This document shows positions 12,593-62,250 of a stretch of DNA of 64,000 nt, piece by piece. The position numbers and the translations under genes were made by a program. The number at the start of each line of letters is the position of its first letter. Positions within the stretch are counted from its first letter, which is position 1. The notes beneath the pieces are model-generated. The model saw only the letters and a list, made by a program, of their open reading frames with translations, was not told the DNA's origin and did no database searches. Origin of the DNA: Octopus sinensis (lineage: Eukaryota); contig NC_043014.1 of the NCBI RefSeq assembly GCF_006345805.1, forward strand, positions 45,942,001 through 46,006,000, read 5' to 3'.

Positions 12593-13185
12593 GTTTCTTT
12601 ATTACCCACAAGGGGCTAAACACAGAGGGGACAAACAAGGACAGAGAAACGGATTAAGTCGATTACATCGACCCCAGTGCGTAACTGGTACTTAATTTAT
12701 CGACCCCGAAAGGATGAAAGGCAAAGTCGACCACGGTGGAATTTGAACCCAGAACGTAAAGACAGACGAAATACCTATCTCTTTACCACCCACAAGGGGC
12801 TAAATAAACACAGAGGGGACAAACAAGGACAGACAAACGGATTAAGTCGATTACATCGACCCCAGTGCGTAACTGGTACTTAATGTATCGATCCCGAAAG
12901 GATGAAAGGCAAAGTCGACCTCGGCGGAATTTGAACCCAGAACGTAACGGCAGACGAAATACCTATTTCTTTACTACCCACAAGGAGCTAAACACAGAGG
13001 GGACAAACAAGGACAGACATAGGTATTAAGTCGATTACATCGACCCCAGTGCGTAACTGGTACTTAAAGTATCGATCCCGAAAGAATGAAAGGCAAAGTC
13101 GACCTCGGCGGAATTTGAACCCAGAAAGGTAACGGCAGACGAAATACGGCTACGCATTTCGCCCGGCGTGCTAACGTTTCTGCCA
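12593..13185 (-). mobile_element. SINE-B trimer (one head + three bodies)
   Basis: Junction GACGAAATACCTAT(T/C)TCTTT at ~12770 and ~12960; single head ending at 13185; monomers carry different diagnostic variants. Confidence 0.9.
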
Positions 13186-13252
13186 AGAGGTTTCGAATAA
13201 TTAAAGTTATTAAAATTCAGACATAATATCTATCCATTCATTATCTTCTTTT

Positions 13253-13698
13253 GGCGATCTTTCGTCTCTAGTAGACTTTTCTGTCGATTTCCGTAAATTT
13301 TTTTTTTTTTTTTACGTATGGGCTTGCGGGAACTTTTGAAGTAATATACATACATATACACATACACCGAGTAAAAAATTTCAGTTATCTCTTTCTTTCA
13401 CACATTACTCTCTCTGTCTCTTCACACACACTAACAGAAGCACTTCACTTACACAACATACTGTCTGTCTCCCACACCCCATCAAACACACACACACACA
13501 CACGCACGCACGCACACACACATGTCCATCAATGCTCCCATGCACGGTAACTTCAAAAGAACTTCCCTCGTCATACAATCGCTTTCTCTTAGTCTCTTTC
13601 GCTCTCATTACTTCAAAAGTTCCCGCAAGCCCATATGTAAAAAAAAAAAATTTTTTACGGAAATCGACGGAAAGGTCTACTAGAGACGAAAGATTGCC
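13253..13698. mobile_element. MITE-L with ~95-bp TIRs (GG termini)
   Basis: GGCGATCTTTCGTCTCTAGTAGAC...GAAGTAAT inverted as ATTACTTC...GAGACGAAAGATTGCC; flanks CTTCTTTT / CTTTTTTT (7/8 match, probable 8-bp TSD). Confidence 0.8.
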
Positions 13699-14004
13699 CT
13701 TTTTTTTTTAACTGACAGTAAGACGTTCTTTGAGGGAGATTTGGTTGCTATATCCAGCGAGTTGAGCGACCAGGTATAAAGAAACAATATATGACTGAAC
13801 ACAAAAAAAAAAAAAGCTGCCGGCAGCCCATCCATGACTATCATATTCGATAGTCAGTCAGTCGATGATGGTTCATCGGTCGTCGCTTCAAACTTTGCCA
13901 TACCTTAAATAAACCAGAGAGCCTCTACGTGCCATTTGACATGCTAGAAATAACAGCAAAAAACCTTCCTCGTAATAAATAAAGCCGTATTAGACGATGC
14001 TGCC

Positions 14005-14034
14005 TTAAAAGAATAATAATAATGATAATAATAA

Positions 14035-14073
<39 letters not shown>

Positions 14074-14105
14074 GCAAAGAAGAAGAGGAAGAAGAAGAAG
14101 AGGAA

Positions 14106-14152
<47 letters not shown>

Positions 14153-14225
14153 AGAAGAAAAGAAAAAGAAGAAAAAGAAAAAGAAAAAGAAGAAAAAGAA
14201 AAAGAAGGAGAAGAAGAAGAGATAG
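14005..14225. repeat. (AAT)n-(GAA)n-(GAG/GAA)n-(AAAAAG)n compound repeat; second copy at 15573-15793
   Basis: Direct reading. Confidence 0.95.
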
Positions 14226-14527
14226 TCATGGCTGAAAATGAATGCTTTTGATCAGTGAGTTCTGTTTAATCAGGGCAGATCTTAAAGATCCATTAGGGCT
14301 GATCCGGGGCTAAACAAGAACGATGGCCGAACAAGGTCTTCAGTAAATCACTGGTCGTATGACCTTGTTGTAATATGAGAGAAAAAGTAAGGATAAAAAA
14401 AAAACATTAAAAAAAGCCTCGGCAGTGTTTTCAGTAAACAGGAGGCGCTCAAAAAGAAGAATACGACTAGGTCGCTGGGTACGGTAGAAATAGCAGCCAA
14501 ACTTCCTTCACATCATATCATAGCTAT

Positions 14528-14750
14528 CTATTTCTTTACTACCCACAAGGGGCTTAAACACAGAGGGGACAACAAGGACAGACATAGGTATTAAGTCGAT
14601 TACATCGACCCCAGTGCGTAACTGGTACTTAAAGTATCGATCCCGAAAGAATGAAAGGCAAAGTCGACCTCGGCGGAATTTGAACCCAGAAAGGTAACGG
14701 CAGACGAAATACGGCTACGCATTTCGCCCGGCGTGCTAACGTTTCTGCCA
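14528..14750 (-). mobile_element. Hybrid SINE-B at the duplication junction
   Basis: Tail variant GGCTTAAAC matches the 16099 copy; body/head variants (GACATAGG, AAAGTATCGATCCCGAAAGAATG, AAAGGTAACG) match the 12965-13185 copy. Confidence 0.85.
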
Positions 14751-14817
14751 AGAGGTTTCGAATAATTAAAGTTATTAAAATTCAGACATAATATCTATCC
14801 ATTCATTATCTTCTTTT

Positions 14818-15264
14818 GGCGATCTTTCGTCTCTAGTAGACTTTTCTGTCGATTTCCGTAAATTTTTTTTTTTTTTTACGTATGGGCTTGCGGGAACTTT
14901 TGAAGTAATATACATACATATACACATACACCGAGTAAAAAATTTCAGTTATCTCTTTCTTTCACACATTACTCTCTCTGTCTCTTCACACACACTTACA
15001 GAAGCACTTCACTTACACAACATACTGTCTGTCTCCCACACCCCATCAAACACACACACACACACACGCACGCACGCACACACACATGTCCATCAATGCT
15101 TCCCATGCACGGTAACTTCAAAAGAACTTCCCTCGTCATACAATCGCTTTCTCTTAGTCTCTTTCGCTCTCATTACTTCAAAAGTTCCCGCAAGCCCATA
15201 TGTAAAAAAAAAAAAATTTTTTACGGAAATCGACGGAAAGGTCTACTAGAGACGAAAGATTGCC
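14818..15264. mobile_element. MITE-L, duplicate copy
   Basis: Same TIRs as 13253-13698, inside the second duplication unit. Confidence 0.8.
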
Positions 15265-15602
15265 CTTTTTTTTTTTAACTGACAGTAAGACGTTCTTTGA
15301 GGGAGATTTGGTTGCTATATCCAGCGAGTTGAGCGACCAGGTATAAAGAAACAATATATGATTGAACACAAAAAAAAAAAAAAGCTGCCGGCAGCCCATC
15401 CATGACTATCATATTCGATAGTCAGTCAGTCGATGATGGTTCATCGGTCGTCGCTTCAAACTTTGCCATACCTTAAATAAACCAGAGAGCCTCTACGTGC
15501 CATTTGACATGCTAGAAATAACAGCAAAAAACCTTCCTCGTAATAAATAAAGCCGTATTAGACGATGCTGCCTTAAAAGAATAATAATAATGATAATAAT
15601 AA

Positions 15603-15641
<39 letters not shown>

Positions 15642-16098
15642 GCAAAGAAGAAGAGGAAGTAGAGGAGGAAGAAGTGGAAGAGGAGGAACAAGAGGAAGAT
15701 GAAGAAGAGGAAGAAGAAGAAGAAAAGAAAAAGAAAAAGAAGAAAAAGAAAAAGAAAAAGAAGAAAAAGAAAAAGAAGGAGAAGAAGAAGAGATAGTCAT
15801 GGCTGAAAATGAATGCTTTTGATCAGTGAGTTCTGTTTAATCAGGGCAGATCTTAAAGATCCATTAGGGCTGATCCGGGGCTAAACAAGAACGATGGCCG
15901 AACAAGGTCTTCAGTAAATCACTAGTCGTATGACCTTGTTGTAATATGAGAGAAAAAGTAAGGATAAAAAAAAAACATTAAAAAAAGCCTCGGCAGTGTT
16001 TTCAGTAAACAGGAGGCGCTCAAAAAGAAGAATACGACTAGGTCGCTGGGTACGGTAGAAATAGCAGCCAAACTTCCTTCACATCATATCATAGCTAT

Positions 16099-16506
16099 CT
16101 ATTTCTTTACTACCCACAAGGGGCTTAAACACAGAGGGGACAAACAAGGACAGACAAACAGATTAAGTTGATTATATCGACCCCAGTGTGTAACTGGTAC
16201 TTAATTTATCGACCCCGAAAGGATGAAAGGCAAAGTCGACCTCGGCGGAATTCGAACTCAGAACGTAACGGCAGACGAAATACCTATTTCTTTATTACCC
16301 ACAAGGGGCTAAACACAGATCGGACAAACAAGGATAGACATAGGTATTAAGTCGATTACATCGACCCCAGTGCGTAACTGGTACTTAATTTATCGACCTC
16401 GAAAGGATGAAAGGCAAAGTCGACCTCGACGGAATTCGAACTCAGAACGTAACGGCAGACGAAATACCACTAAGCATTTCGCCCGGCGTGCTAACGATCT
16501 TGCCAG
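16099..16506 (-). mobile_element. SINE-B dimer
   Basis: Two bodies joined at GAAATACCTATTTCTTT (~16280), one head. Confidence 0.88.
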
Positions 16507-19364: not shown

Positions 19365-19960
19365 GTCGGAGGAGAAAGAGGGAGGACAAAAGAAGAGAGG
19401 GGGTGGGAGGAATGGGGAAAAGAGGGTTGGAGGGAGGAGAGAGAGGGAGGGAGAGATAAGGCGAGAGAGAAAAGGTGGGTGAGAGGAGTGAAGGACAAGG
19501 CGGAAGGAAGGGAAGGAGAGATGAAAGGGAGAGGGCGAGATGAAGAGAGACGGAAGAAAAGAAAGAGGGAGGACAAAAGAAGAGAGGGGGTGGGAGGAAG
19601 GGGGAAAGAGGGTTGGAGGGAGGGAGAGAAAAGGTGGGTGAGGGAGTGAAGGACAAGGCGGAAGGAAGGGAAGGAGAGATGAAAGGGAGAGGGCGTGATG
19701 AAGAGATAGGGGGGGAGAGAAAGAGACGGAAGAAAAGAAAGAGGGAGGACAAAAGAAGAGAGGGGGTGGGAGGAATGGGGGAAAGAGGGAGGGAGGGAGA
19801 GAAAAGGTGGGTGAGGGAGTGAAGGACAAGGCGGAAGGAAGGGAAGGAGAGATGAAAGGGAGAGGGCGTGATGAAGAGATAGGGGGAGAGAAAGAGAGAC
19901 GGGGGAATAGAGAGAGAAAAAACGAAAGAAGGGGAGGGAAATAAGAAAAGACGGTTTAGA
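19365..19960. repeat. Polypurine tandem repeat, three units of ~176-186 bp
   Basis: GAGGGAGGACAAAAGAAGAG at 19379, 19565, 19741; almost no pyrimidines on the + strand. Confidence 0.88.
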
Positions 19961-22735: not shown

Positions 22736-24170
22736 CGGTTTATTTAGTGTAGCACTGTCCAAGTGTTGGTTTTCGTTGAAGACTGCAAGATGCGGTGATT
22801 TGAGGGACATTTGACTGCTGTTTCTAGCAAGCAGGCCAAGCCACCACAAAGAGGCGTATCTCGTTGGATTGGTAGAAAAAACTGCCGTTCAAACCGAAAA
22901 GATCCCGGTTTATTTAGTATATATTTCTTTACTACCCACAAGGGGCTAAACATAGAGGGGACAAACAAGGACAGACGAAGGGATTGAGTCGATTATATCG
23001 TCCCCAGTGCGAAACTGGTACTTTATCGACCCCGAAAGGATGAAAGGTAAAGTTGAACTCGGCGGAATTTGAACTCACAACGTAACGACAGACGAAATAC
23101 TTATTTCTTTATTACCCACAAGAGGCTAAACATAGAGGGGACAAACAAGGACAGACATAGGTATTAAGTCGATTATATCGACCCCGGTGCGTAACTGGTA
23201 CTTAATTTATCGACCCCGAAAGTATGAAAGGCAAAGTCGACCTCGGCGGAATTTGAACTCAGAACGTAACGACAGACGAAATACCTATTTCTTTATTACC
23301 CACAAGGGGCTAAACAAGGACAGACATAGGTATTAAGTCGATTACATCGACCCCGGTGCGTAACTGGTACTTAATTTATCGACCCCGAAAGGATGAAAGG
23401 CAAAGTTGACCTCGGCGGAATTTGAACTCAGAACGTAACGACAGACGAAATACCTATTTCTTTATTACCCACAAGGGGCTAAACACAGAGGGGACAAACA
23501 AGGACAGACATAGGTATTAAGTCGATTACATCGACCCCGGTGCGTAACTGGTACTTAATTTATCGACCCCGAAAGGATGAAAGGCAAAGTCGACCTCGGC
23601 GGAATTCGAACTCACAATGTAACGACAGACGAAATACCGCTAAGCATTTCGCCTGGCGTGCTAACGTGTCTGCCAGCTTGCCGCCTTTTAAAGTTATTTA
23701 GTATAGCACTGTCCAAGTGTTGGTTTTCGTTGAAGACTGCAAGATGCGGTGGTTTTGAGGGACATTTGACTGCTGTTTCTAGCAAGCAGGCCAAGCCACC
23801 ACAAAGGGGCGTATCTCGTTGGATTGGTAGAAAAAACTGCCGTTCAAACCGAAAAGATCCCGGTTTATTTAGTATAGTACTGTCCAAGTGTTGGTTTTCG
23901 TTGAAGAGTGCAAGATGCGATGGTTTGAGGGACATTTGACTGCTGTTTCTAGCAAGCAGGCCAAGCCACCACAAAGGGGCGTATCTCGTTGGATTGGTAG
24001 AAAAAACTGCCGTTCAAACCGAAAAGATCCCGGTTTATTTAGTATAGTACTGTCCAAGTGTTGGTTTTCGTTGAAGACTGCAAGATGCGGTGGTTTTGAG
24101 GGACATTTGACTGCTGTTTCTAGCAAGCAGGCCAAGCCACCACAAAGAGGCGCATCTCGTTGGATTGGTT
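22706..24170. repeat. Tandem array of a 170-bp unit = MITE-D right TIR + 140 bp of flank, interrupted by a SINE-B tetramer
   Basis: GATCC TIR ends at 22735, 22905, 23860 and 24030 (period 170), each followed by CGGTTTATTTAG. Confidence 0.92.
22922..23693 (-). mobile_element. SINE-B tetramer
   Basis: Four bodies (periods 184, 169, 184) and one head; flanked by 12-bp TSD TTATTTAGTATA (22910-22921 / 23694-23705). Confidence 0.92.
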
Positions 24171-30706: not shown

Positions 30707-30937
30707 GGCGGCGATCTGGCAGAAACGTTAGCGCGCCGGGCGAAATGCTCAGCGGTATTTCGTCTGTCTTTACGTTCCGAGTTCAAATTCCGCCGAGGTC
30801 GACTTTGCCTTTCATCCTTTCGGGGTCGATTAAATAAGTACCAGTTACGCACTGTGGTCGATATAATCGACTTAATCCGTTTGTCTGTCCTTCTTTGGCC
30901 CCTCTGTGTGTAGCCCCTTGTGGGTAGTAAAGAAATA
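30707..30937 (+). mobile_element. SINE-B monomer
   Basis: Head + body; flanking GAAATTCTGGAAT repeated on both sides (TSD-like). Confidence 0.9.
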
Positions 30938-31236
30938 AGAAATTCTGGAATCGCGGAAAATACAACAAAAAAACTAGGTTAGTATTTAATGCAAGATGGT
31001 CCTCGCATCGCCCCACAGTACATGACAGGGCTAAAGATGTGTTTGAGAAACCAAAGACACATTAAGGCTGATTTTGTTGCGAGGATATAACTCTTTGCTT
31101 CCCTGTTAGAGCAATGCAACCAAGGTCACCCAAACTATCTCCTGGCTCCCAACATTTAATTAAGTTCTGTTATATTCAGAGTAACCATGAGGAAGAAAGG
31201 TGAGTGCTGGGGACAACAGTATATCTGCAAAACGAA

Positions 31237-31718
31237 GGCGGCGATCTGGCAGAATCGTTAGCGCGCCGGGCGAAATGCTTAGCGGTATTTCGTCTGCCGC
31301 CGCGGCGAGCTGGCAATGGTGGCGAGCTGGCAGAATCGTTAGCACACCGGGCGAAATACGTAGCCGTATTTCGTCTGCCGTTACGTTCTGAGTTCAAATT
31401 CCGCCGAGGTCGACTTTGCCTTTCATCCTTTCGGGGACGATAAATTAAGTACCAGTTACCAACTGGGGTCAATGTAATCGACTTAATCCGTTTGTCCCCT
31501 CTGTGTTTAGCCCCTTGTGGGTAGTAAAGAAATAGGTATTTCGTCTGCCGTTACGTTCTGAGTTCAAATTCCGCCGAGGTCGACTTTGCCTTTCATCCTT
31601 TCGGGGTCGATTAAATAAGTACCAGTTACGCACTGGGGTCGATATAATCGACTTAATCCGTTTGTCTGTCCTTGTTTGTCCCCTCTCTGTTTAGCCCCTT
31701 GTGGGTAATAAAGAAATA
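31237..31718 (+). mobile_element. SINE-B nested inside SINE-B
   Basis: Outer TSD AGTATATCTGCAAAACGAA (31218-31236 / 31719-31737); inner copy 31300-31534 flanked by GGTATTTCGTCTGCCG (31284-31299 / 31535-31550). Confidence 0.92.
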
Positions 31719-31984
31719 AGTATATCTGCAAAACGAAGCTGAAGTAGTAGAAAAACAAAGCGATCGAGTCGCAAACCGTCACGGATTTCAATTGGTTGTA
31801 ACCAGGACAACCTCAAGGAGAAAGGCGCCAAGAGTGAACAGGACGGTGCCAGAAATATGGTTAACAAAAAAAGACAAAAAAAACGAAGAACACAAGCTCA
31901 TTAAAACATTTATGCAAAGTGATGTAAAATAGGAGGCTGGTGATGTCCCTCAAGACAAAAAAGATGCTGGGATTGTCTCTAAAT

Positions 31985-33497: not shown

Positions 33498-34113
33498 TGG
33501 CATAAACGTTAGCACGCCGGGCGAAATGCGTAGCCGTATTTCGTCTGCCGCTACGTTCTGAGTTCAAATTCTGCCGAGGTCGACTTTGCCTTTCATCCTT
33601 TCGCGGTCGATTAAATAAGTACCAGTTACGCACTGGGTCGTCGATATAAGAGGGGACAAACAAGGACAGACAAAGGGATTAAGTCGATTACATCGACCCA
33701 GTGCGAAACTGGTACTTTATTTATCGACCCCGAAAGGATGAAAGGCAAAGTCGACCTCGGCGGAATTTGAACTCCGAACGTAACGACAGACGAAATACCT
33801 ATTTCTTTATTACCCACAAGGGGCCAAACACAGAGGGGACAAACAAGGACAGACATAGGTATAAAGTCGATTACATCGACGCCAGTGAGTAACTGGTACT
33901 TTATTCATCGACCCCGAAAGGATGAAAGGCGAAGTCGACCTCGGCGGAGTCGATTACATCGACCCCAGTGCGTAACTGGTACTTTATTTATCGACCCCGA
34001 AAGGATGAAAGGCAAAGTCGACCTCGGCGGAATTTGAACTCAGAACGTAACGGCAGACGAAATACCGCTAAGCATTTCGCCCGGCGCGCTAACGTTTCTG
34101 CCAGCTCGCCGCC
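33498..34113. mobile_element. Tail-to-tail inverted SINE-B pair (+ fragment 33498-33650; - rearranged multimer 33650-34113)
   Basis: Heads point inward from both ends; the minus copy has an internal partial repeat. Confidence 0.85.
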
Positions 34114-35344: not shown

Positions 35345-37070
35345 CCAGGACTAACTTATAGCCCCGGGATTAACTACAACTTGAGAGCCCCAGGACAAGC
35401 TACAACTTATGAGCCCCGGGACTAGCTACAGCTTGAGAGCCCCAGGACTAGCTACAGCTTGAGAGCCCCAGGACTAACTACAGCTTGAGAGCCCAGGGAT
35501 TAACTACAACTTGAGAGCCCCGGGATTAACTACAACTTGAGAGCCCCGGGATTAACTACAACTTGAGAGCCCCGGGATTAACTACAACTTGAGAGCCCCT
35601 GGACTAACTACAACTTGAGAGCCCCGGGACTAACTACAACTTAAGAGCCCCGGGACTAACTACAACTTAAGAGCCCCGGGACTAACTACAACTTATGAGC
35701 CCCGGGACTAACTACAACTTAAGAGCCCCGGGATTAACTACAACTTGAGATCCCCGGGACTAACTACAACTCGAGAGCCCCGGGACTAACTACAACTTAT
35801 GAGCCCCGGGACTAACTACAACTTATGAGCCCCGGGACTAACTACAACTAAGAGCCCCGGGATTAACTACAACTTGAGAGCCCCGGGACTAACTACAAAT
35901 CGAGAGCCCCGGGACTAACTACAAATCGAGAGCCCCGGGACTAACTACAAATCGAGAGCCCCGGGACTAACTACAACTTAAGTGCCCCGGGACTAACTAC
36001 AACTTATGAGCCCCGGGACTAACCACAACTTGAGAGCCCCGGGACTAACTACAACTTGAGGGCCCCTGGACTAACTACAACTTGAGACCCCGGATTAACT
36101 ACAACTGAGAGCCCCGGGACTAACTACAACTTAGAGCCCCGGGATTAACTACAACTTGAGAGCCCCAGGACAAGGTACAACTTATGAGCCCCGGGACTAA
36201 CTACAACTTGAGAGCCCCAGGACTAACTACAACTCGAGAGCCCCGGGACTAACTACAACTTGAGAGCCCCGGGACTAACTACAACTTAAGAGCCCCGGAC
36301 TAACTACAACTCGAGAGCCCCGGGACTACTACAACTTAAGAGCCCCGGACTAACTACAACTTATGAGCCCCGGGACTAACTACAACTTAAGAGCCCCGGG
36401 ATTAACTACAACTTGAGATCCCCGGGACTAACTACAACTCGAGAGCCCCGGGACTAACTACAACTTATGAGCCCCGGGACTAACTACAACTTATGAGCCC
36501 CGGGACTAACTACAACTTAAGAGCCCCGGGATTAACTACAACTTGAGAGCCCCGGGACTAACTACAAATCGAGAGCCCCGGGACTAACTACAAATCGAGA
36601 GCCCCGGGACTAACTACAAATCGAGAGCCCCGGGACTAACTACAACTTAAGTGCCCCGGGACTAACTACAACTTATGAGCCCCGGGACTAACCACAACTT
36701 GAGAGCCCCGGGACTAACTACAACTTGAGGGCCCCTGGACTAACTACAACTTGAGAGCCCCGGGATTAACTACAACTTGAGAGCCCCGGGACTAACTACA
36801 ACTTAGAGCCCCGGGATTAACTACAACTTGAGAGCCCCAGGACAAGGTACAACTTATGAGCCCCGGGACTAACTACAACTTGAGAGCCCCAGGACTAACT
36901 ACAACTCGAGAGCCCCGGGACTAACTACAACTTGAGAGCCCCGGGACTAACTACAACTTAAGAGCCCCGAGACTAACTACAACTTGAGAGCCCCGGGATT
37001 AACTACAACTTAAGAGCCCCAGGACTAACTACAACTTATGAGCCCCGGGACTAACTACAACTTAAGAGCC
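35345..37070. repeat. 26-bp minisatellite, ~66 units, with a ~670-bp higher-order duplication
   Basis: Consensus GAGCCCCGGGACTAACTACAACTT(GA/AA/AT); rare variants repeat at 668-672 bp spacing (35747/36415; 36170/36842). Confidence 0.95.
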
Positions 37071-37074
37071 TCCT

Positions 37075-37799
37075 TTTAGGGTCGATAAAATATGTATCAG
37101 TGGCACACTGGGGTCGATGTAATCAATTTACTCATCCTCCCAAATTGTTGGTCTTGTACCAAAGTTTGGAATGCCGCTAAGCATTCTGCATGGCGTGCTT
37201 ACGATTCTTATTTCTTCACTGCCCACAAGGGGCTAAATATAGAGGGGACAAACAAGCACATTAAATCGATTACATCGACCCCAGTGCGTAACTGGTACTT
37301 AATTTATCCACCCAGAAAGGATGAAAGGCAAAGTCGACCTCGGCGGAATTTGAACTCGCAACGTAACGGCAGACGAAATACCTATTTCTCTACTACCCAC
37401 AAGGGGCTAAACACAGAGAGGAAAAACAAGGACAGACAAACGGATGAAGTCGATTATATCGACTCCAGTGCGTAACTGGTACATATTTAATCGACCCCGA
37501 AAGGATGAAAGGCAAAGTCGACCTCGGCGGAATTTGAACTCAGAACGCAGCGGCAGACGAAATACTTATTTCTTTACTACCCACAAGGGGCTAAACACAG
37601 AGAGGACAAACAAGGACAGACAAACGGATTAAGTCAATTATAAAACGACCCCAGTGCGTAACTGGTACTTAATTTATCGACCCCGAAAGGATGAAAGGCA
37701 AAGTCGACCTCGGCGGAATTTGAACTCAGAACGTAACGGCAGACGAAATACCGCTAAGCATTGCACCCGTCGTGCTAACGATTCTGCCAGCTCGCCGCC
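37075..37799 (-). mobile_element. SINE-B trimer plus adjacent B fragments
   Basis: Three bodies and a complete head (CTGCCAGCTCGCCGCC) at 37785-37799; a short + strand B fragment at 37075-37130. Confidence 0.87.
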
Positions 37800-45451: not shown

Positions 45452-46110
45452 GGTGGCGAGCTGGCAGAATCGTTAGCACGCCGGGTGAAATGCATAGCAG
45501 TACTCGCGCATCCACGCTGGCTAGTCGTGACTAGTCGATCTTTACTTTGTGTTTTTGTGTTTTATTTACTTTGTTTTAAAAAAATTATTTACTTTGTGTA
45601 AAATAAATTATTTATATGTTTTTATTTACTTGCTAGGTAGTCGTTGTAGGATCGACTAGTCACGACTACTAGCGCGGATGCGCGAGTACGCGAATGTGCG
45701 CACCGGACTACTCTTCTTAAGTAGTACCCCATTAGCTATCTGTCGCAATGCTAGCGGTATTTCGTCTGCTGTTACGTTCTGAATTCAAATCCGCCGAGGT
45801 CGACTTTGCCTTTCATCCTTTCGGGGTCGATAAATTAAGTACCAGTTACGTACTGGGGTCGATGTAATCGACTCAATCCGTTTATCTGTCCTTGTTTGTC
45901 CCCTCTGTGTTTAGCCCCTTGTGGGTAGTAAAGAAAATAAATAGGTATTTCGTCTGCCGTTACGTTCTGAGTTCAAATTCCGCCGGGGTCGACTTTGCCT
46001 TTCATCCTTTCGGGGTCGATAAATTAAGTACCGATGAAACACTGGGGTCGATGTAATCGACTTACTCCCTCCCCCAAAATTTCAGGCCTTGTGCCTAAAG
46101 TAGAAAGGTG
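45452..46110 (+). mobile_element. SINE-B dimer interrupted by a 246-bp templated insertion
   Basis: Head 45452-45498, insertion 45500-45745, bodies resume at GGTATTTCG; junction AAATAGGTATTTCG at ~45940. Confidence 0.88.
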
Positions 46111-46719: not shown

Positions 46720-48960
46720 ATGGCTAGATGGCTCGTTAGATGGATATGTCAAGATAGATAGATAGATAGACGGATGGATGGGTCGAAGGATGAGTGGATG
46801 GCTCCAAGACTAGCTCGAATGGATGGCCGGCTAGCTCGAAGGACGGATAGATGGATGAAAGGTTCGATAGATAGCTAGATAGATAGGAAGATAGATAGAT
46901 AGACGGATGGATGGGTCGAAGGATGAGTGGATGGCTCCACGGCTAGCTCGAAGGACGGATAGATGGATGAAAGGTCCGATAGATAGCTAGATAGATAGAT
47001 AAGCTAGATAGATAGACGGATGGATGGGTCGAAGGATGAGTGAATGGCTCCACGGCTAGCTCGAATGGATGGCCGGCTAGCTCGAAGGACGGATAGATGG
47101 ATGAAAGGTCCGATAGATAGCTAGATAGATAGGAAGATAGATAGATAGACGGATGGATGGGTCGAAGGATGAGTGATGGCTCCACGCTAGCTCGAATGGA
47201 TGGCCGGCTAGCTCGAAGGACGGATAGATGATGAAAGGTCCGATAGATAGCCAGATAGATAGATAAGCTAGATAGATAGACGGATGGATGGGTCGAAGGA
47301 TGAGTGAATGGCTCCACGGCTACCTCGAATGGATGGCCGGCTAGCTCGAAGGACGGATAGATGGATGAAAGGTCCGATAGATAGCTAGATAGATAGGAAG
47401 ATAGATAGATAGACGGATGGATGGGTCGAAGGATGAGTGGATGGCTCCACGGCTAGCTCGAATGGATGGCCGGCTAGCTCGAAGGACGGATAGATGGATG
47501 AAAGGTCCGATAGATAGCCAGATAGATAGATAAGCTAGATAGATAGACGGATGGATGGGTCGAAGGATGAGTGAATGGCTCCACGGCTAGCTCGAATGGA
47601 TGGCCGGCTAGCTCGAAGGACGGATAGATGGATGAAAGGTCCGATAGATAGCTAGATAGATAGATAGATAAGCTAGATAGATAGACGGATGGATGGGTCG
47701 AAGGATGAGTGAATGGCTCCACGGCTAGCTCGAATGGATGGCCGGCTAGCTCGAAGGACGGATAGATGGATGAAAGGTCCGATAGATAAGCTAGATAGAT
47801 AGACGGATGGATGGGTCGAAGGATGAGTGAATGGCTCCACGGCTAGCTCGAATGGATGGCCGGCTAGCTCGAAGGACGGATAGATGGATGAAAGGTCCGG
47901 TAGATAGCCAGATAGATAGATAAGCTAGATAGATAGACGGATGGATGGGTCGAAGGATGAGTGAATGGCTCCACGGCTAGCTCGAATGGATGGCCGGCTA
48001 GCTCGAAGGACGGATAGATGGATGAAAGGTCCGATAGATAGCTAGATAGATAGATAAGCTAGATAGATAGACGGATGGATGGGTCGAAGGATGAGTGAAT
48101 GGCTCCACGGCTAGCTCGAATGGATGGCCGGCTAGCTCGAAGGACGGATAGATGGATGAAAGGTCCGATAGATAGCTAGATAGATAGATAAGCTAGATAG
48201 ATAGACGGATGGATGGATGGGTCGAAGGATGAGTGAATGGCTCCACGGCTAGCTCGAATGGATGGCCGGCTAGCTCGAAGGACGGATAGATGGATGAAAG
48301 GTCCGGTAGATAGCCAGATAGATAGATAAGCTAGATAGATAGACGGATGGATGGATGGGTCGAAGGATGAGTGAATGGCTCCACGGCTAGCTCGAATGGA
48401 TGGCCGGCTAGCTCGAAGGACGGATAGATGGATGAAAGGCCCGATAGATAGCTAGATAGATAGACGGATGGATGGATGGGTCTAAGGCTAGCTCGAAGGA
48501 CGGATAGATGGATGGAAGGCTCGACAGATAGCTAAATGGGGTACTACTTAAGAAGAGTAGTCCCGGTGCGCACATTCGCGTACTCGCGCATCCGCGCTAG
48601 CTAGTCGTGACTAGTCGATCCTACAACGACTACCTAGCAAAGTAAATAAAACACAATATAAATAATTTATTTTACACAAAGTAAATAATTTTTTTAAAAC
48701 AAAGTAAATAAAACACAAAAACACAAAGTAAAGATCGACTAGTCACGACTAGCCAGCGTGGATGCGCGAGTACGCGAGTGCGCGCACCGGGACCGCTCTT
48801 CTTAAGTAGTACCCTCCAAGGTTCGAAGAATGGATGGATGGCCGGCTAGCTCGAAAACGGATAGATGGATAAAAAGGCTCGACAGATAGCTAGATGGATG
48901 GCCCGATGAATAGAACGAATGGATGGGTGGATGACTCGAAGGACGGGTGGAAGGCTCGAT
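46720..48960. repeat. Complex satellite, ~14 units of ~120-140 bp built from GATA/GATG/GACG tetramers and GCTAGCTCGAA anchors
   Basis: GGTCGAAGGATGAGT recurs about every 134 bp (e.g. 47814, 47948, 48082). Confidence 0.95.
48539..48814. mobile_element. MITE-K with ~82-bp CpG-rich TIRs, inserted in the satellite
   Basis: GGGTACTACTTAAGAAGAG...CTAGTCGATC inverted as GATCGACTAG...CTCTTCTTAAGTAGTACCC; AT-rich core; no TSD seen. Confidence 0.87.
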
Positions 48961-51755: not shown

Positions 51756-51789
51756 GTTTCAAATTTTGGCACGAGACCAACAATTTCGG

Positions 51790-52420
51790 GTGAGGTGGGG
51801 GCTAGTCAATTACATAGACTCCAATGCTCAATAGGTACTTATTTTATCGACCCAGGAAGGCTGAAAGGCTAAGTCGACCACGGCGGAATTTGAATTGGGA
51901 AAATAAATACGAACGAAACGTCGACCCGCTAACGATTCTGCCAGCTCGCCGCCATAATAATAATAATAATAATCTTTTCTACTATAGACACAAGGCTTGA
52001 AATTTGGTGGGGAGGAGATAGGTCGATTACATCGACCCTCCACTGTTCAACAGGTACTTATTTTATCGACCTCGGAAGGCTGAAGGGCAAATTCGACCCC
52101 GGCGGAATTTGAACGCAGAACGTAAATACGGACGAAATGCCACTAAGCATTTTGCCCTGCATGCCAGCGATTCTGCCAGCTCGCTGCCTTTAAATGGGCT
52201 TTAATCTAATCACGAGGCCAGCAATTTGGAGAGGAAGGGGATAAGTCGATACCTACCGCCCCAGTACTTGATCGGTGCTTTATTTTATTGACCCCGAAAA
52301 AACGAAAATCGAAGTTGACCCCAGCGGTATTTGAACTCAGAACGTAGAGCTAGGACAAATACCACAAAGTTGTTTTTTTTTTCTTTTCGATGTGCTTAAC
52401 GATTGAGCTAATCGACTCCT
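51790..52420 (-). mobile_element. Three older SINE-B-subfamily copies in tandem
   Basis: Repeated GTACTTATTTTATCGACC..GAAGGCTGAA.GGC..AGTCGACC..GGCGGAATTTGAA with heads ending CTGCCAGCTCGC. Confidence 0.75.
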
Positions 52421-52442
52421 TTCTAAGAATATTAATAATTGG

Positions 52443-52869
52443 GGATCTTTTCGGTTTGAACGGCAGTTTTTCCTAGCGGTGTCATATGAAATTGTCACCC
52501 ATAATTATGACCCTAGTATCGATCTATTGCATTTCAATCTGTTTTAGGATTAAGATCAGTTAGGGGTGGGGGGAAGGGTAGCTTTTTTTTCTTCACAAAT
52601 GTAAATAAACCCAATCTGTTTCTTAAACGAGGGACATATTCATATGGCACAGAATGTTTTTTTTACCTCAATAGACGTCAGTGATTGGTTGTAATTGCGG
52701 AAATTGAAGGAAAACAACAACAAATATCTTACAAACCATAGAATTTTCTCAATAAAGCCAAGAGAAAAAGATGTTTTATAAACACATTCTACCAGTATAC
52801 GAAGTTTAAAAATGTTTTAGTTACCTAGAAATTATTTTTAAAAAACTGCCGTTCAAACCGAAAATATCC
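52443..52869 (-). mobile_element. MITE-D flanked by a 13-bp duplication
   Basis: TATTAATAATTGG at 52430-52442 and 52870-52882. Confidence 0.93.
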
Positions 52870-54492: not shown

Positions 54493-54900
54493 GGCAGCGA
54501 GCTGGCAGAAACGTTAGCACGCCGGGCGAAATGCGTAGCCGTATTTCGTCTGCCGCTACGTTCTGAGTTCAAATTCCGCCGAGGTCGACTTTGTCTTTCA
54601 TCCTTTCGGGGTCGATAAATTAAGTACCAGTTACGCACTGGGGTCGATATAATCGACTTAATCCGTTTGTCTGACCTTGTTTGTCCCCTCTATGTTCAGC
54701 CCCTTGTGGGTAATAAAGAAATAGGTATTTCGTCTGCCGTTACGGTCCGAGTTCAAATTCCGCCGAGGTCGACTTTGCCTTTCGGGGTCGATAAATTAAG
54801 TACCAGTTACGCACTGGGGTCGATGTAATCGACTTAATCCGTTTGTCTGTCCTTGTTTGTTCCCCTCTATGTTTAGCGCCTTGTAGGTAGTAAAGAAATA
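54493..54900 (+). mobile_element. SINE-B dimer
   Basis: 17-bp TSD GGTATATTAATAAATTT (54473-54489 / 54901-54917); internal junction AAATAGGTATTTCG. Confidence 0.92.
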
Positions 54901-55227: not shown

Positions 55228-55575
55228 TTACTAGATTAGCCTTCGAATGACGCCACCCCGCTGGCTAAGCGAGCAGGCCAACAGAAGAAAGAGTGAGAGA
55301 AAGTTGTGGCGAAAGAGTACAGCAGGGACCGCCACCAACCCCTGCCGGAGCCTCATGGAGCCTTTTGGGTGTTTTCGCTCAATAAACACTCACAACGCCC
55401 AGTCTGGGAATCGAGACCGCGATCCTACGACTGCGAGTCCGCTGCCCTAAACACTGGGCCATTGCGCCTCCACTGTTTTCGCTCAATAAACACTCACAAC
55501 GCCCAGTCTGGGAATCGAAACCGCGATCCTACGACTGCGAGTCCGCTGCCCTAACCACTGGGCCATTGGGTCCAC
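55228..55575 (-). mobile_element. SINE-C with tandemly duplicated 104-bp head
   Basis: TGTTTTCGCTCAATAAAC at 55370 and 55474. Confidence 0.87.
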
Positions 55576-61488: not shown

Positions 61489-61790
61489 GGCGGCGAGCTG
61501 GCAGAAACGTTAGCACGCCCAGCGAAAAGCTAAGCGGTTTTTCGTCTGCCGTTACGTTCTGAGTTCAAATTCCGCCGAGGTCGACTTTGCCTTTCATCCT
61601 TTCGGAGTCGATTAAATAAGTACCAGTTACGCACTGGAGTCGATATAATCGTTTGTCCGTCCTTGTTTGTCCTCTCTGTATTTAAGCCCCTTGTGGGTAA
61701 AGAAATAGGTATTTCGTCAGCCTTTACGTTCTGAGTTCAAACTCCGCCGAGGTCGACTTTGCTTTTCATCCCTTCGGGGTCGATAAATTT
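61489..61790 (+). mobile_element. SINE-B, head + 1.5 bodies
   Basis: Junction AAAGAAATAGGTATTTCG at ~61700; truncated against a MITE-D fragment. Confidence 0.87.
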
Positions 61791-62027
61791 CAACCAATCA
61801 ATGACGTCTATTGAAGGTGAAAACATTCTGTGCTGTATGAATATGTCCCTCGTTTAAGAAACAGATTGGGTTTATTTACATTTGTGATTTAAAAAAAAGA
61901 TACCTTTCCCCCACCCCTAACCCTAAAAGAGATTGAAATGCAATAGATCGATACTAGGGTCATAATTATGGGTGACAATTTCATATGACACCGCTAGAAA
62001 AAACTGCCGTTCAAACCGAAAAGATCC
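61790..62027 (+). mobile_element. MITE-D right half
   Basis: From TTTCAACCAATCAATGAC to TIR GAAAAGATCC. Confidence 0.88.
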
Positions 62028-62250
62028 GAGTCCCACAAAATTTCGGACCTTGTGCCTAGAGTAGAAAAGAATTCTTAAAAGTAAAATAGAAGATATTGAG
62101 GGAAATTTCACCACTATTTCTAGCAGACCGAGAAACCGCAGGTGAGCCCATATCAACGTATTTTTTTGCGTCTCTGTTTCACTGGGGAAGGGCCGACCCC
62201 CGAAACGTCTGCATTCGCCCGCAAAACTCACCACAAACTTTAATATACAT

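Follow-up and report, generated by a model that had tools for sequence, protein, structure and literature searches.

Tandem arrays of an octopus SINE share one junction that looks made by retrotransposition, with a single nested self-insertion

SINE-derived tandem arrays are an already known class of repeat. Alu inserts into the A-rich tracts of Alu through the TT/AAAA preference of the L1 endonuclease, and U6-L1 chimeras are among the products of template jumps (here and below, a slash in a target or join marks the break). In the clam Scapharca broughtonii, tandem SINEs take the form TSD1-(SINE)n-TSD1, and unequal homologous recombination between TSDs has been discussed as one possible route to such arrays (Martelossi et al. 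2024, PMC11481361). The same source cites an Alu 'target site triplication' (Lee et al. 2015, as cited in PMC11481361). Among satellites, the sSat repeats of squamates are SINE-derived (Vassetzky et al. 2023, PMC10702118) and Patella PcH-sat derives from Nin-SINE (PMC11121367); both are viewed as early stages of satellite formation (PMC10702118, PMC11121367). The transition from SINE to tandem array or satellite has been explained mostly by unequal recombination (PMC10702118, PMC11481361). In Magnaporthe, tripartite chimeric retrocopies arise when a LINE reverse transcriptase (RT) jumps twice between templates (PMC2104539).

We analysed SINE-B in a 64,000-nucleotide stretch of Octopus sinensis contig NC_043014.1, called the window, which a first-pass annotation had described as home to a self-targeting retroposon that builds multimers. 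The SINE-B unit is ~245 bp long, lacks a long ORF, and consists of a ~60-bp head and a 184-bp body whose terminus is AAAGAAATA. SINE-B is a putative Pol III-type SINE. By eye, an A-box-like TGGCAGAA[A/T]CG, present in the head only, resembles TRGCNNAGTGG, and a B-box-like GAGTTCAAATTCC in the repeated body resembles GGTTCGANNCC; the consensus body has no TTTT run (Pol III terminator). A tRNA ancestry of the head is possible; ARAGORN found no tRNA genes, and Rfam gave no match at the gathering threshold, nor at E ≤ 10 using copy F. No LINE sharing the SINE-B 3′ tail was found within the window. The head is predicted to fold into one long hairpin, with a conserved 13-bp hairpin in which 97.6% of cells are paired among 13 heads and two pairs are compensated. 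Six of the 13 heads are of a CCG type, and the others include a GG type. The tail GAAAUA could pair with UAUUUC at the head/body boundary; we found no mechanism that uses such pairing. TSDs of variable length (7 to 20 bp) flank copies E, F, G, I, J, O, and P, and none was found around A, B, C/D, and H. In the 5′-truncated copies O, P, Q, and R, the 5′ ends fall at body columns 51, ~2, 16, and ~128, respectively. All keep the AAAGAAATA end, and two of these four deep truncations lie at the hairpin, at its apex (P) and its 3′ base (Q).

The focal element, G (31238-31718), contains a second SINE-B copy (Table 1). Its outer TSD, annotated earlier as 19 bp, is present and measures 20 bp. The other details of that annotation proved exact, namely the second complete copy at 31300-31534, the 16-bp repeats on either side of it, and the different diagnostic bases of the inner head (6 of 46 positions between H1 and H2). 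The outer head, with the A-box-like TGGCAGAATCG, and the outer body both match solitary copy F, and the inner head matches A and J; this pairs the outer head with the last body and marks the inner copy as foreign. Distances to F1 are 0.049 for G2 and 0.083 for the inner body G1, which shares a 14-bp deletion with P1 and lies at 0.042 from N1. H2 is of the CCG type, with an A-U-improved hairpin at 31348-31377. The inner copy is a full-length SINE-B from another subfamily, inserted by TPRT with its own 16-bp TSD. The irregular 5′ end of this copy looks like template switching at an RNA 5′ end. Two adjacent insertions followed by a deletion were rejected as an account of G, since H1 is linked to G2 both by the 20-bp outer TSD and by their subfamily match.

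Table 1. Positions of SINE-B arrays and of the parts of nested element G in the window.
Feature	Position	Strand	Details
Array B, CCG-type head and 3 bodies	12594-13185	-	junctions 12964/12963 and 12776/12775
Element C, one body	14529-14750	-	recombinant of B1 (columns 19-132) and D2 (columns 168-172)
Array D, head and 2 bodies	16100-16506	-	junction 16285/16284
Array E, head and 4 bodies, 12-bp TSD TATACTAAATAA	22922-23682	-	junctions 23455, 23286, 23102
G, outer TSD, left copy AGTATATCTGCAAAACGAAG	31218-31237	+	20/20 against 31719-31738
G, outer head H1, GG type, GATC/GCGCGCC variant, to hairpin loop	31238-31283	+	44/46 as in head of solitary copy F
G, 13-bp hairpin of H1	31267-31296	+	predicted fold; loop TAGC 31280-31283; junction point 31283/31284
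G, inner 16-bp duplication, left copy GGTATTTCGTCTGCCG	31284-31299	+	16/16 against 31535-31550; new 5′ end directly after
G, inner copy, irregular 5′ end: CCGC, partial head GGCGAGCTGGCA, ATGGT	31300-31320	+	read from sequence
G, inner complete copy: head H2 and body G1 ending AAAGAAATA	31321-31534	+	H2 42/46 against heads A and J
G, outer body G2	31535-31718	+	opens with the right copy (16 nt) of the inner duplication; TAAATAAG subfamily like F1
G, outer TSD, right copy AGTATATCTGCAAAACGAAG	31719-31738	+	
Array M	33649-34110	-	head, body with 83-bp internal duplication, junction 33800/33799, cut-off second body
Array H, head and 3 bodies	37209-37796	-	junctions 37567 (A), 37383 (G); middle body from another subfamily
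Array N, head, body N1, N2 with tail of related B′ family	45455-46108	+	junction 45943/45944
Array J, CCG-type head and 2 bodies, 17-bp TSD GGTATATTAATAAATTT	54497-54900	+	junction 54723/54724
Array K, head, body K1, then K2	61492-61787	+	junction 61707/61708

The window holds nine arrays, built of a head and, behind it, two to four 184-bp bodies, and their 13 canonical junctions all read AAAGAAATA followed directly by G or A and then GTATTTCG. At each of them, a unit ending exactly at its 3′ terminus meets the base that opens the 3′ arm of the head hairpin (TAGC/GGTATTTCG). To the left stands the whole tail, as it also occurs in solitary copies bounded by a TSD, and every inner unit retains the full tail (AAAGAAATA type). 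Later units are head-truncated at one point, with a complete head on the first unit only, and a single TSD surrounds the whole array in E, J, and G. The joining of all multimers at one point, rather than at points scattered along the SINE, had been recognized in the first-pass annotation, whose listed multimers all exist; it missed array M. It had also placed the join at the head/body boundary, where it does lie; this boundary is inside the putative Pol III promoter region, with the B-box-like motif in the body, and is the hairpin apex, a structure that the annotation did not mention. The only non-canonical junction is the 83-bp internal duplication in M, located at a TCGAC microhomology; the second body of M is cut off by an inverted fusion with L (33498-33649). 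The hairpin loop of the N head is interrupted by a ~250-bp insert, the K head has a compensated hairpin (GAAAAGC/GGTTTTTCG, the two arms), and K2 runs, past some unrelated sequence, into a B′-type tail near 62031-62067. Three older B′-family copies at 51760-52420 are nested in the (ATT)n tails of one another. An assembly artefact was rejected as the source of the arrays, as units inside them differ by 2 to 12%.

The target-site bias of SINE-B is real. Solitary copies favour Y/RRTA(T) targets, and the RTAT-type motif reported earlier opens 8 of the 13 independent 3′ flanks, compared with a frequency of 2.1% per window position (P = 4 × 10−11; the motif was defined post hoc, after the data had been seen, and n is small). 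NNTA stands at 10/13 flanks against 7.9% (P = 2 × 10−9), and the base preceding the TSD is a pyrimidine in 7/7. The SINE also carries its own preferred site, as had been proposed. Of all sites in the element, the internal C/GGTATTT comes closest to the solitary-copy target consensus, and it is the sole consensus site fitting Y/RRTATWT; the hairpin apex also matches Y/RRTAT. Priming by annealing between the tail and the nicked target is not visible as microhomology in these copies, in all of which the entire tail lies ahead of the TSD. Among 18 primary insertions, a single nested full-length copy is as the target motif alone predicts (P = 0.16 to 0.92). Joins at boundary sites number 13 of 30, while the boundary makes up 0.9 to 12.8% of motif sites, an excess over the motif prediction (P ≤ 3.5 × 10−5) that the single nested copy does not show. 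Thus, the RTAT preference alone cannot build the arrays, contrary to the first-pass proposal of repeated self-insertion, and the excess argues against a separate endonuclease hit for each unit. What stands of self-targeting is one fresh 16-bp duplication at the SINE's own site, in G; the frequency of self-hits is not explained by preference. Self-insertion of SINE-B is seen once in the window, which does not establish that route for every extra body.

If self-insertion were nonetheless recurrent, each extra body would be a separate nicked, target-primed SINE-B insertion at C/GGTAT of a resident copy. Its 5′ end would be resolved by the 16-nt TSD overhang, or the whole head, annealing to the cDNA, and the second head would not be kept, with G as the exception that escaped resolution. 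G proves that insertion at the boundary site with a 16-bp TSD happens, and the site's fit to the target consensus, heterogeneous arrays, and alpha units (TAATACCTATG) within different residents all agree with this route. So does array E, where the head, last unit, and all alpha units share T13 in the TSD zone (alpha units elsewhere have C13) and E4 bears 6 private changes against 1 to 2 in E1-E3 (P = 0.0025). The first base at the junction is G in 11 cases, A in 2, and C in none, though six of 13 heads are of the CCG type (P = 3 × 10−4 if drawn from current heads). The lack of C-start junctions would be expected if C/CGTAT is a poor target, and GG-type heads occur in 7/9 arrays versus 1/5 solitary copies (Fisher P = 0.09). 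We nevertheless consider the route unlikely. A strong extra bias toward the boundary must be assumed, and 12 head-less joins stand against one double-headed join, when ~70% of solitary insertions are full-length. Moreover, the left and right 'TSD' copies, which a simple TSD model would make identical, differ in B, J, K, and M. The B and J heads are CCG and start CGTATTTCG, yet their later junctions read GGTATTTCG, which only heteroduplex segregation over the head could rescue, and the first base of adjacent units differs in arrays B, J, E, and H. Nor are the duplicated segments identical, with 2/16 differences between B2 and B3 and 3/16 between K1 and K2. Across adjacent units, the first 16 nt show 13 differences in 224 nt (5.8%), not below the rest of the unit; this speaks weakly against a simple TSD model, and heteroduplex repair could rescue it. 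Array-specific variants outside the TSD zone, common to the units of B, D, and M (such as G at column 27 in all three bodies of B), would require later gene conversion. Inner units younger than the head and last unit are seen in E only, private-change counts being alike elsewhere. CpG-rich, fast-mutating heads confound this age test, and head divergence was dropped as evidence because solitary copy A has an equal disparity (~3 private changes in 46 nt of head, by eye, against 3 in ~184 nt of body).

Other features would be accounted for if RT switched templates or re-primed in the course of one TPRT event. RT would copy a SINE-B RNA to the hairpin apex, and the released cDNA (...ATACC-3′, a mimic of the nicked target) would prime at the tail of another SINE-B RNA, repeating at ~0.5 per unit until one template is read to its 5′ end. 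A single TSD per array, exactly one head that is always 5′, and heterogeneous units all fit, the last including hetero-dimers with a B′-tail unit as the first template (N and K). The head is linked to the first unit in J, where J1 bears the CCG-linked C16 marker and J2 does not, and in K through its compensated hairpin. Unit numbers are geometric-like, with 5, 5, 2, and 1 observed and 6.8, 3.2, 1.6, and 0.75 expected at p = 0.48. Both truncations at the hairpin agree with a stop there, and extra partial 5′ heads, in the inner copy of G (31300-31320) and in SINE-A (55370-55568), are taken to show an enzyme that switches templates. The double-jump chimeras made by LINE RT provide a precedent (PMC2104539). 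Set against these points, about half of the junctions should read A/CGTAT and none does (P = 3 × 10−4), unless only ...TACC-3′ ends re-prime. Arrays with alpha units should share the head of the alpha subfamily and do not, and variants shared within arrays, as well as the near-identity of E1-E3, require later local events. Junctions show no read-through into the flank of the acceptor RNA, so initiation would have to be as precise as in normal TPRT, and the enzyme would have to be assumed to stall at the hairpin. We regard this explanation as somewhat unlikely when taken by itself. The data agree about equally well with RT template switching, with whole multimers retrotransposing, and with recurrent self-insertion.

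These two mechanisms can be joined in a broader proposition, that the retrotransposition machinery recurrently adds units at the hairpin apex without DNA recombination, so that the SINE would grow unit by unit into a satellite-like array. Units could be added by endonuclease-nicked self-insertion with the 5′ end resolved by homology, or by a released ...ATACC-3′ cDNA that mimics the target and re-primes on the tail of another SINE RNA. We give this proposition a little under an even chance. Unless ectopic gene conversion is frequent, recurrent de novo joining is favoured by the nearest neighbours of array units, which lie in another array for 10 of 16, by the differing head haplotypes and last units of the alpha arrays, and by heterogeneous arrays, namely H (where the subfamily of H2 differs from that of H1 and H3), J, and those that end with tails of another family (N and K).

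Exchange at the DNA level also acted on SINE-B. Element C, which sits in a 1768-bp duplication (97.1% identity), matches B1 at 15/15 informative sites and D2 at 2/2 in the column ranges of Table 1. Unequal exchange between SINE-B units is thereby proven, which goes against the first-pass interpretation, and arrays are shown to have been reshaped later by unequal homologous exchange. Monomers are on average closer within arrays than between them (0.063 vs 0.077; permutation P = 0.003), and in E, units E1-E3 differ from one another by 2.4 to 3.8% and from E4 by 7.3 to 8.4%. With the shared variants of B, D, and M, this goes part of the way toward the closeness within arrays that the first-pass annotation had named as evidence against its own model. 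An origin at the DNA level for each locus, with slippage or unequal crossing-over duplicating the body of a solitary copy without reverse transcription, would draw on the same similarity, on the proven exchange, on the duplication within M at its microhomology, and on a window rich in other 100- to 180-bp tandem repeats. We judge it highly improbable. Independent duplications would not share the retrotransposition terminus and the same head nucleotide in 13 of 13 junctions; flanks begin differently (TATAC, GATAG, AGTAT, and GGTAT), so there is no common microhomology; and arrays of mixed subfamilies in intact TSDs (J and H) cannot come from local duplication. DNA-level duplication is therefore largely refuted as the origin of the junction and remains valid for later changes in unit number. 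Rolling-circle reverse transcription, or replication of a circularised body unit, would give a fixed junction between the 3′ end and an internal 5′ point and near-identical units such as E1-E3. This is scarcely credible here, given that most arrays mix subfamilies, a single complete 5′ head is always attached, units number only 2 to 4, and there is no sign of body excision as a circle.

Our preferred route, which we hold tentatively as possible rather than probable, is a small number of founding joins followed by the spread of whole multimers and by unequal exchange. The junction looks made by retrotransposition. Its left side is the exact retrotransposition terminus in every case, which argues for reverse transcription and not random duplication. 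The machinery may have made the canonical junction in a limited number of founding SINE-into-SINE events, in which the internal head would have been lost or never copied. Elements with one head and n bodies would then themselves be transcribed and retrotransposed, and unit number and sequence would afterwards drift through unequal exchange and gene conversion. Multimers could be transcribable and mobile as units because the body lacks the TTTT terminator and every unit ends in the tail at which RT starts; their retrotransposition would therefore explain the single TSD around a whole array. Junctions that start with G or A, never C, fit inheritance from GG-type founders. Alpha units are never last: they open arrays B, D, and M and fill the first three places of E, much like a left monomer tied to its position, and this placement would fit amplification as a unit. 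G would be an ordinary nested hit at the best target site, a model of a founding event and not a routine intermediate. The heterogeneous arrays described above count against the spread of multimers. Furthermore, the four alpha arrays have at least three head haplotypes and unlike last units (D2 and E4 are not close), which is not what is expected of copies of one dimeric master. Retrotransposition as a unit would be marked most clearly by 5′-truncated multimers, and none was found in the 64-kb window.

The sample behind this preference is one 64-kb window with nine arrays, and all statistics rest on that window because scans of public data gave no usable extra copies. Viral and JGI metagenome contigs scanned with exact 27-mers gave no hits. 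In a 21-mer scan, body columns 42-91, a 50-bp core, recurred at 80 to 92% identity in nine JGI metagenome contigs, where the surrounding SINE-like sequence was otherwise unrelated; this core may be a conserved central domain of the Nin-DC/Deu-like kind. Searching proteins with the reverse-frame ORF that spans the junction returned one 543-bp ENA contig with a solitary related copy.

SINE-B offers a sharper handle on the passage from SINE to array, with an exact terminus on one side of the junction and a structured, target-like site on the other. It also offers arrays of 1 to 4 units in intact TSDs and a nested copy at that very nucleotide. Were reverse transcription to add the units, this would be a distinct and experimentally testable route to the birth of satellites, and the RNA hairpin of a retroposon would prove able to programme the element's multimerisation. 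Should the arrays instead descend from a few founders that spread as multimers, SINE-B would be a further case in which multimeric SINEs evolve and are also altered by ordinary unequal exchange.

Among described systems, the Scapharca broughtonii arrays resemble those of SINE-B in having one TSD per array and a complete head on the first unit, with the same part of the head absent from later ones. Both are mollusc SINEs, with a conserved core domain in the clam element and a candidate one in SINE-B, and the first head of the clam array is tRNA-related. They differ in that inner units of the clam are 3′-tail-truncated, whereas SINE-B units keep the tail to the last base, and in that the SINE-B junction lies at a target-like hairpin apex, where a nested copy has its own TSD. 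sSat and PcH-sat likewise consist of ~150- to 180-bp tandem units that represent a segment of a SINE, and their terminal unit is longer and extends to the SINE terminus. Those satellites can run to ~1000 units near telomeres or centromeres, with boundaries that vary by locus or taxon; SINE-B has 2 to 4 units in dispersed arrays within TSDs and one boundary at all loci. With dimeric and multimeric SINEs (Alu and others; PMC10702118), SINE-B shares a single 5′ Pol III promoter (a putative one in SINE-B), related monomers, and a TSD around the whole. Multimers of the Alu type have a fixed number of monomers with clear left/right diagnostics, whereas n ranges from 1 to 4 in SINE-B and positional bias is found in alpha units only. 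As in Alu-into-Alu hot spots, the element bears its own preferred target, giving nested, head-to-tail copies. The Alu sites lie in the tail or linker and complete elements pile up there, whereas the SINE-B site is in the promoter-bearing region and the second head is usually absent. Like chimeras from LINE template jumps, the arrays hold several RNA copies fused head-to-tail in one TSD, with the 3′ partner cut at a defined 5′ point. Those chimeras are rare and unite unrelated RNAs, whereas the SINE-B partners are copies of the same SINE, and switching would take place at one hairpin apex with a frequency of ~0.5 per unit.

The window holds 18 SINE-B elements, located by BLAST with head and body, which occupy 9.3% of its length. 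They comprise solitary copies (A, C, F and I), 5'-truncated copies (O, P, Q and R), the headed copy L and nine one-head arrays with two to four bodies (B ×3, D ×2, E ×4, G, H ×3, J ×2, K, M and N). TSDs of 7 to 20 bp surround E, F, G, I, J, O and P, and enclose arrays E, G and J entirely. A TSD was sought around array H and none was found, so its 3' flank would be a complex nested or rearranged site. This flank opens with a piece of another SINE that resembles a head (AGAATCGTAAGCACGCC...); beyond it lie a body fragment in inverted orientation and then the 26-bp minisatellite. Array E sits within a 170-bp tandem repeat, whose motif ACCGCTAG(G)AAAAACTGCCGTTCAAACCGAAAAGATCC recurs twice, once inside unit K2. 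Other tandem repeats are unusually abundant in the window, which suggests that this genome or region readily undergoes tandem duplication. In public data, we found one further related copy (L001) and nine JGI metagenome contigs (L002-L010) with only a ~50-bp core, GGTCGACTTTGCCTTTCATCCTTTCGGGGTCGATAAATTAAGTACC (body columns 42-91, e.g., 31577-31626), at 80-92% identity within SINE-like sequences that are otherwise unrelated. This appears to be a SINE core domain that is conserved across taxa and may be Nin-DC/Deu-like.

Coordinates of features in the window
Feature	Position (strand)	Detail
Outer head H1 of G	31238-31283	
16-mer GGTATTTCGTCTGCCG in G, left copy	31284-31299	
Ragged new 5' end of G inner copy	31300-31320	CCGC + GGCGAGCTGGCA + ATGGT
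Second full head H2 + body G1	up to 31534	G1 ends AAAGAAATA
16-mer repeated in G	31535-31550	runs on into body G2
Body G2	to 31718	ends AAAGAAATA
L, further headed SINE-B copy	33498-33649	cut off at inverted fusion with M
L/M inverted junction	33649 (region 33498-34110)	joined tail-to-tail, 3' ends of both lost
Segmental duplication	12960-16283	1.77 kb, tandem; breakpoints within SINE-B units
170-bp repeat around E	22740-24169	2.8 copies at 23694-24169, more below 22921
E-flanking repeat motif	52440-52480; 61990-62028	the second inside K2
Array H 3' flank	37090-37208 (-)	
Hairpin in K head	61520-61545	GAAAAGC...GGTTTTTCG
Insert in N hairpin loop	45503-45748	~250 bp, flanked by ATGCATAGC and ATGCTAGC
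Nested inverted repeats, N insert	45500-45518/45671-45689; 45522-45540/45650-45668	
SINE-A-like copy	55370-55568 (-)	5'-truncated copy of first 104 nt (positions 10-104) fused to full copy's 5' end
Other SINE-A-like heads	1864; 24730; 44506	
Three older, related B'-family SINEs	51760-52420 (-)	head-to-tail, (ATT)n tails; best-preserved copy has its head at 52131-52184
Other tandem repeats	485-1271; 19520-19916; 35353-37070; 46828-48464	180 bp ×4.4, 173 bp ×2.3, 26 bp ×66, 113/134 bp ×11, and long microsatellites

All 13 head-less junctions within the arrays read ...A(A/G)A(A/G)A(A/G)ATA joined to (G/A)GTATTTCG, with G as the first base after the junction in 11 cases and A in two, which bears out the single fixed junction point claimed by the first-pass annotation. 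Apart from these, a single internal junction exists, formed by an 83-bp duplication within M (33865-34031) at a TCGAC microhomology. On the left stands the complete SINE-B 3' terminus, whose last base adjoins the TSD in solitary copies and which a random duplication would meet about once in 230. On the right stands the base with which the 3' arm of a hairpin opens; folding predicts this 13-bp hairpin, CGGGCGAAATGCT-TAGC-GGTATTTCGTCTG. Over the 13 heads, 97.6% of cells remain paired, and compensation is seen at two pairs: six heads, which form the CCG type, have G-C in place of U-G, and K has A-U in place of U-A. Neither the complete terminus nor the hairpin had been described in the first-pass annotation. 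This geometry is shown to point to retrotransposition. The repeated unit holds a B-box-like motif without an A-box-like one, and neither ARAGORN nor Rfam recognized a tRNA in SINE-B. In K, the compensated hairpin creates five consecutive T residues, which could act as an internal Pol III terminator. The insert in N resembles a MITE, one that would have landed only a few bases away from the point at which multimers are joined.

Target preference was likewise confirmed. Of 13 independent 3' flanks, 8 open with RGTAT, GATA or TATA, compared with 2.1% per window position (P = 4 × 10−11), and 10 carry NNTA (7.9%; P = 2 × 10−9); a pyrimidine directly precedes the TSD in seven of seven cases, giving the Y|RRTA(T) bias that had been proposed as an RTAT-type site. 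Within the SINE-B consensus, only the hairpin apex, C|GGTATTT, fits the longest motif version, Y|RRTATWT, and a SINE-B inserting in another would therefore be expected to land there. In the best-preserved B' copy, the equivalent hairpin site is GGCATTTCG, without TA. The two downstream B' copies each begin directly after the previous copy's (ATT)n tail, and no body multimers were seen among the three.

Element G is such an insertion. The 20-bp sequence AGTATATCTGCAAAACGAAG stands in direct orientation on both sides of it (31218-31237 and 31719-31738), the two copies being identical. Between its outer head and that of solitary copy F (30710-30937), 44 of 46 positions agree, and the GATTAAATAAG body variant of F is also that of G2 (distance 0.049). 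The inner head is of the other hairpin type (42/46 against the heads of A and J), and the 14-bp deletion in G1 is also present in P1. Because the outer parts resemble F and the inner ones other copies, the outer head and last body belong to a single old element, into which a full-length copy of foreign origin, 235 bp long and flanked by a 16-bp duplication of its host, has been inserted at the coordinates first proposed.

Can self-insertion account for the arrays? Boundary sites make up 0.9% of RRTA, 3.9% of RRTAT and 12.8% of RRTATWT sites in the window. One full-length nested hit among 18 primary insertions then has a probability of 0.16-0.92, and 13 of 30 joins at boundary sites has P ≤ 3.5 × 10−5. 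Thus, G is expected under any model, and the arrays require something beyond target preference. What is shown is a true nested insertion at the junction base; the joins exceed motif expectation. A fresh duplication per unit, with the 5' end resolved on the homologous TSD, predicts that the first 12-20 nt match on either side of a junction. Instead, adjacent units show 13 differences over 224 positions of these stretches (5.8%), a rate equal to that in the remainder of the unit, and B and J have CCG-type heads opening CGTATTTCG, but later junctions reading GGTATTTCG. The prediction can be saved by assuming in addition that the cDNA, when full-length, pairs with the resident head along its entire length and that the resulting heteroduplex then segregates.

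Repeated de novo joining draws support from the composition of the arrays. The second body of array H belongs to a different subfamily from the first and third, the CCG-linked C16 marker is present in J1 and absent from J2, and the last units of N and K bear the tail of the related B' family. Units of the alpha body subfamily (TAATACCTATG) are never last, standing first in B, D and M and as the first three in E; these arrays have at least three head haplotypes. Private changes number six in E4 versus one or two in E1-E3 (P = 0.0025). Even so, we consider recurrent self-insertion unlikely. Recurrent reverse-transcriptase template switching at the hairpin apex would yield one TSD, one 5' head and mixed units, with geometric-like unit numbers (observed 5, 5, 2 and 1; expected at a per-unit p of 0.48, 6.8, 3.2, 1.6 and 0.75). 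Two of four deep 5' truncations fall at the hairpin (P at the apex, Q at the 3' base), extra partial 5' heads in G and the SINE-A-like copy show that the enzyme switches, and the released cDNA end ...ATACC-3' resembles nicked targets in J and O. The double 5' end of the SINE-A-like copy itself has the appearance of a switch between templates on reaching the 5' end of the RNA; a SINE of this kind points to a cephalopod as the probable source of the DNA. However, C is never the first base of the 13 junctions, even though it would be available from 6 of 13 heads (P = 3 × 10−4), and the alpha arrays lack a common head; we hold this route to be doubtful. Jointly, the two routes that add units by reverse transcription come fairly near an even chance.

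Units are closer within arrays than elsewhere (0.063 versus 0.077; permutation p = 0.003), a pattern that the first-pass annotation would have counted against self-insertion, but the nearest neighbor lies in a different array for 10 of 16 array units. The closeness is driven by E1-E3 (0.024-0.038) and B1-B2. Arrays B, D and M each have a variant of their own, present in every unit and lying outside any TSD zone (G27, G32 and A83, respectively). Duplication at the DNA level alone, locus by locus, is very improbable as the source of the arrays, and rolling circle close to negligible. Exchange between existing arrays is another matter. The segment 12960-14712 recurs at 14525-16283 with 97.1% identity, and element C (14529-14750) within it matches B1 at 15 of 15 informative sites (columns 19-132), then D2 at two of two (columns 168-172). 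On these matches, we take it as proven that recombination between B and D units made the 1.6-kb tandem duplication and the one-body element C. Arrays that lie 3 kb from each other have thus undergone non-allelic homologous recombination.

We tentatively favor, at appreciably less than an even chance, an origin in which a few SINE-into-SINE joins would have founded the arrays and whole multimers would then have retrotransposed, with unequal exchange and gene conversion acting alongside. Retrotransposition of whole multimers is proposed because the body has no TTTT and each unit ends in a start site for reverse transcription.

Comparable arrays exist elsewhere. A clam has TSD-(SINE)n-TSD arrays with a full head on the first unit only (PMC11481361), which E, G and J resemble in lying within one TSD; squamates have SINE-derived satellites (PMC10702118), and limpets a 179-bp satellite derived from Nin-SINE (PMC11121367). 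There, the units either stop short of the full tail or have boundaries that differ from locus to locus; where a mechanism is considered, the discussion centers mainly on unequal recombination (PMC11481361, PMC10702118, PMC11121367). What is new in SINE-B, in contrast, is a tail that is complete at each junction, a junction placed at the apex of a conserved hairpin, where the sequence fits the target consensus, and a nested copy with its own TSD at that same base.
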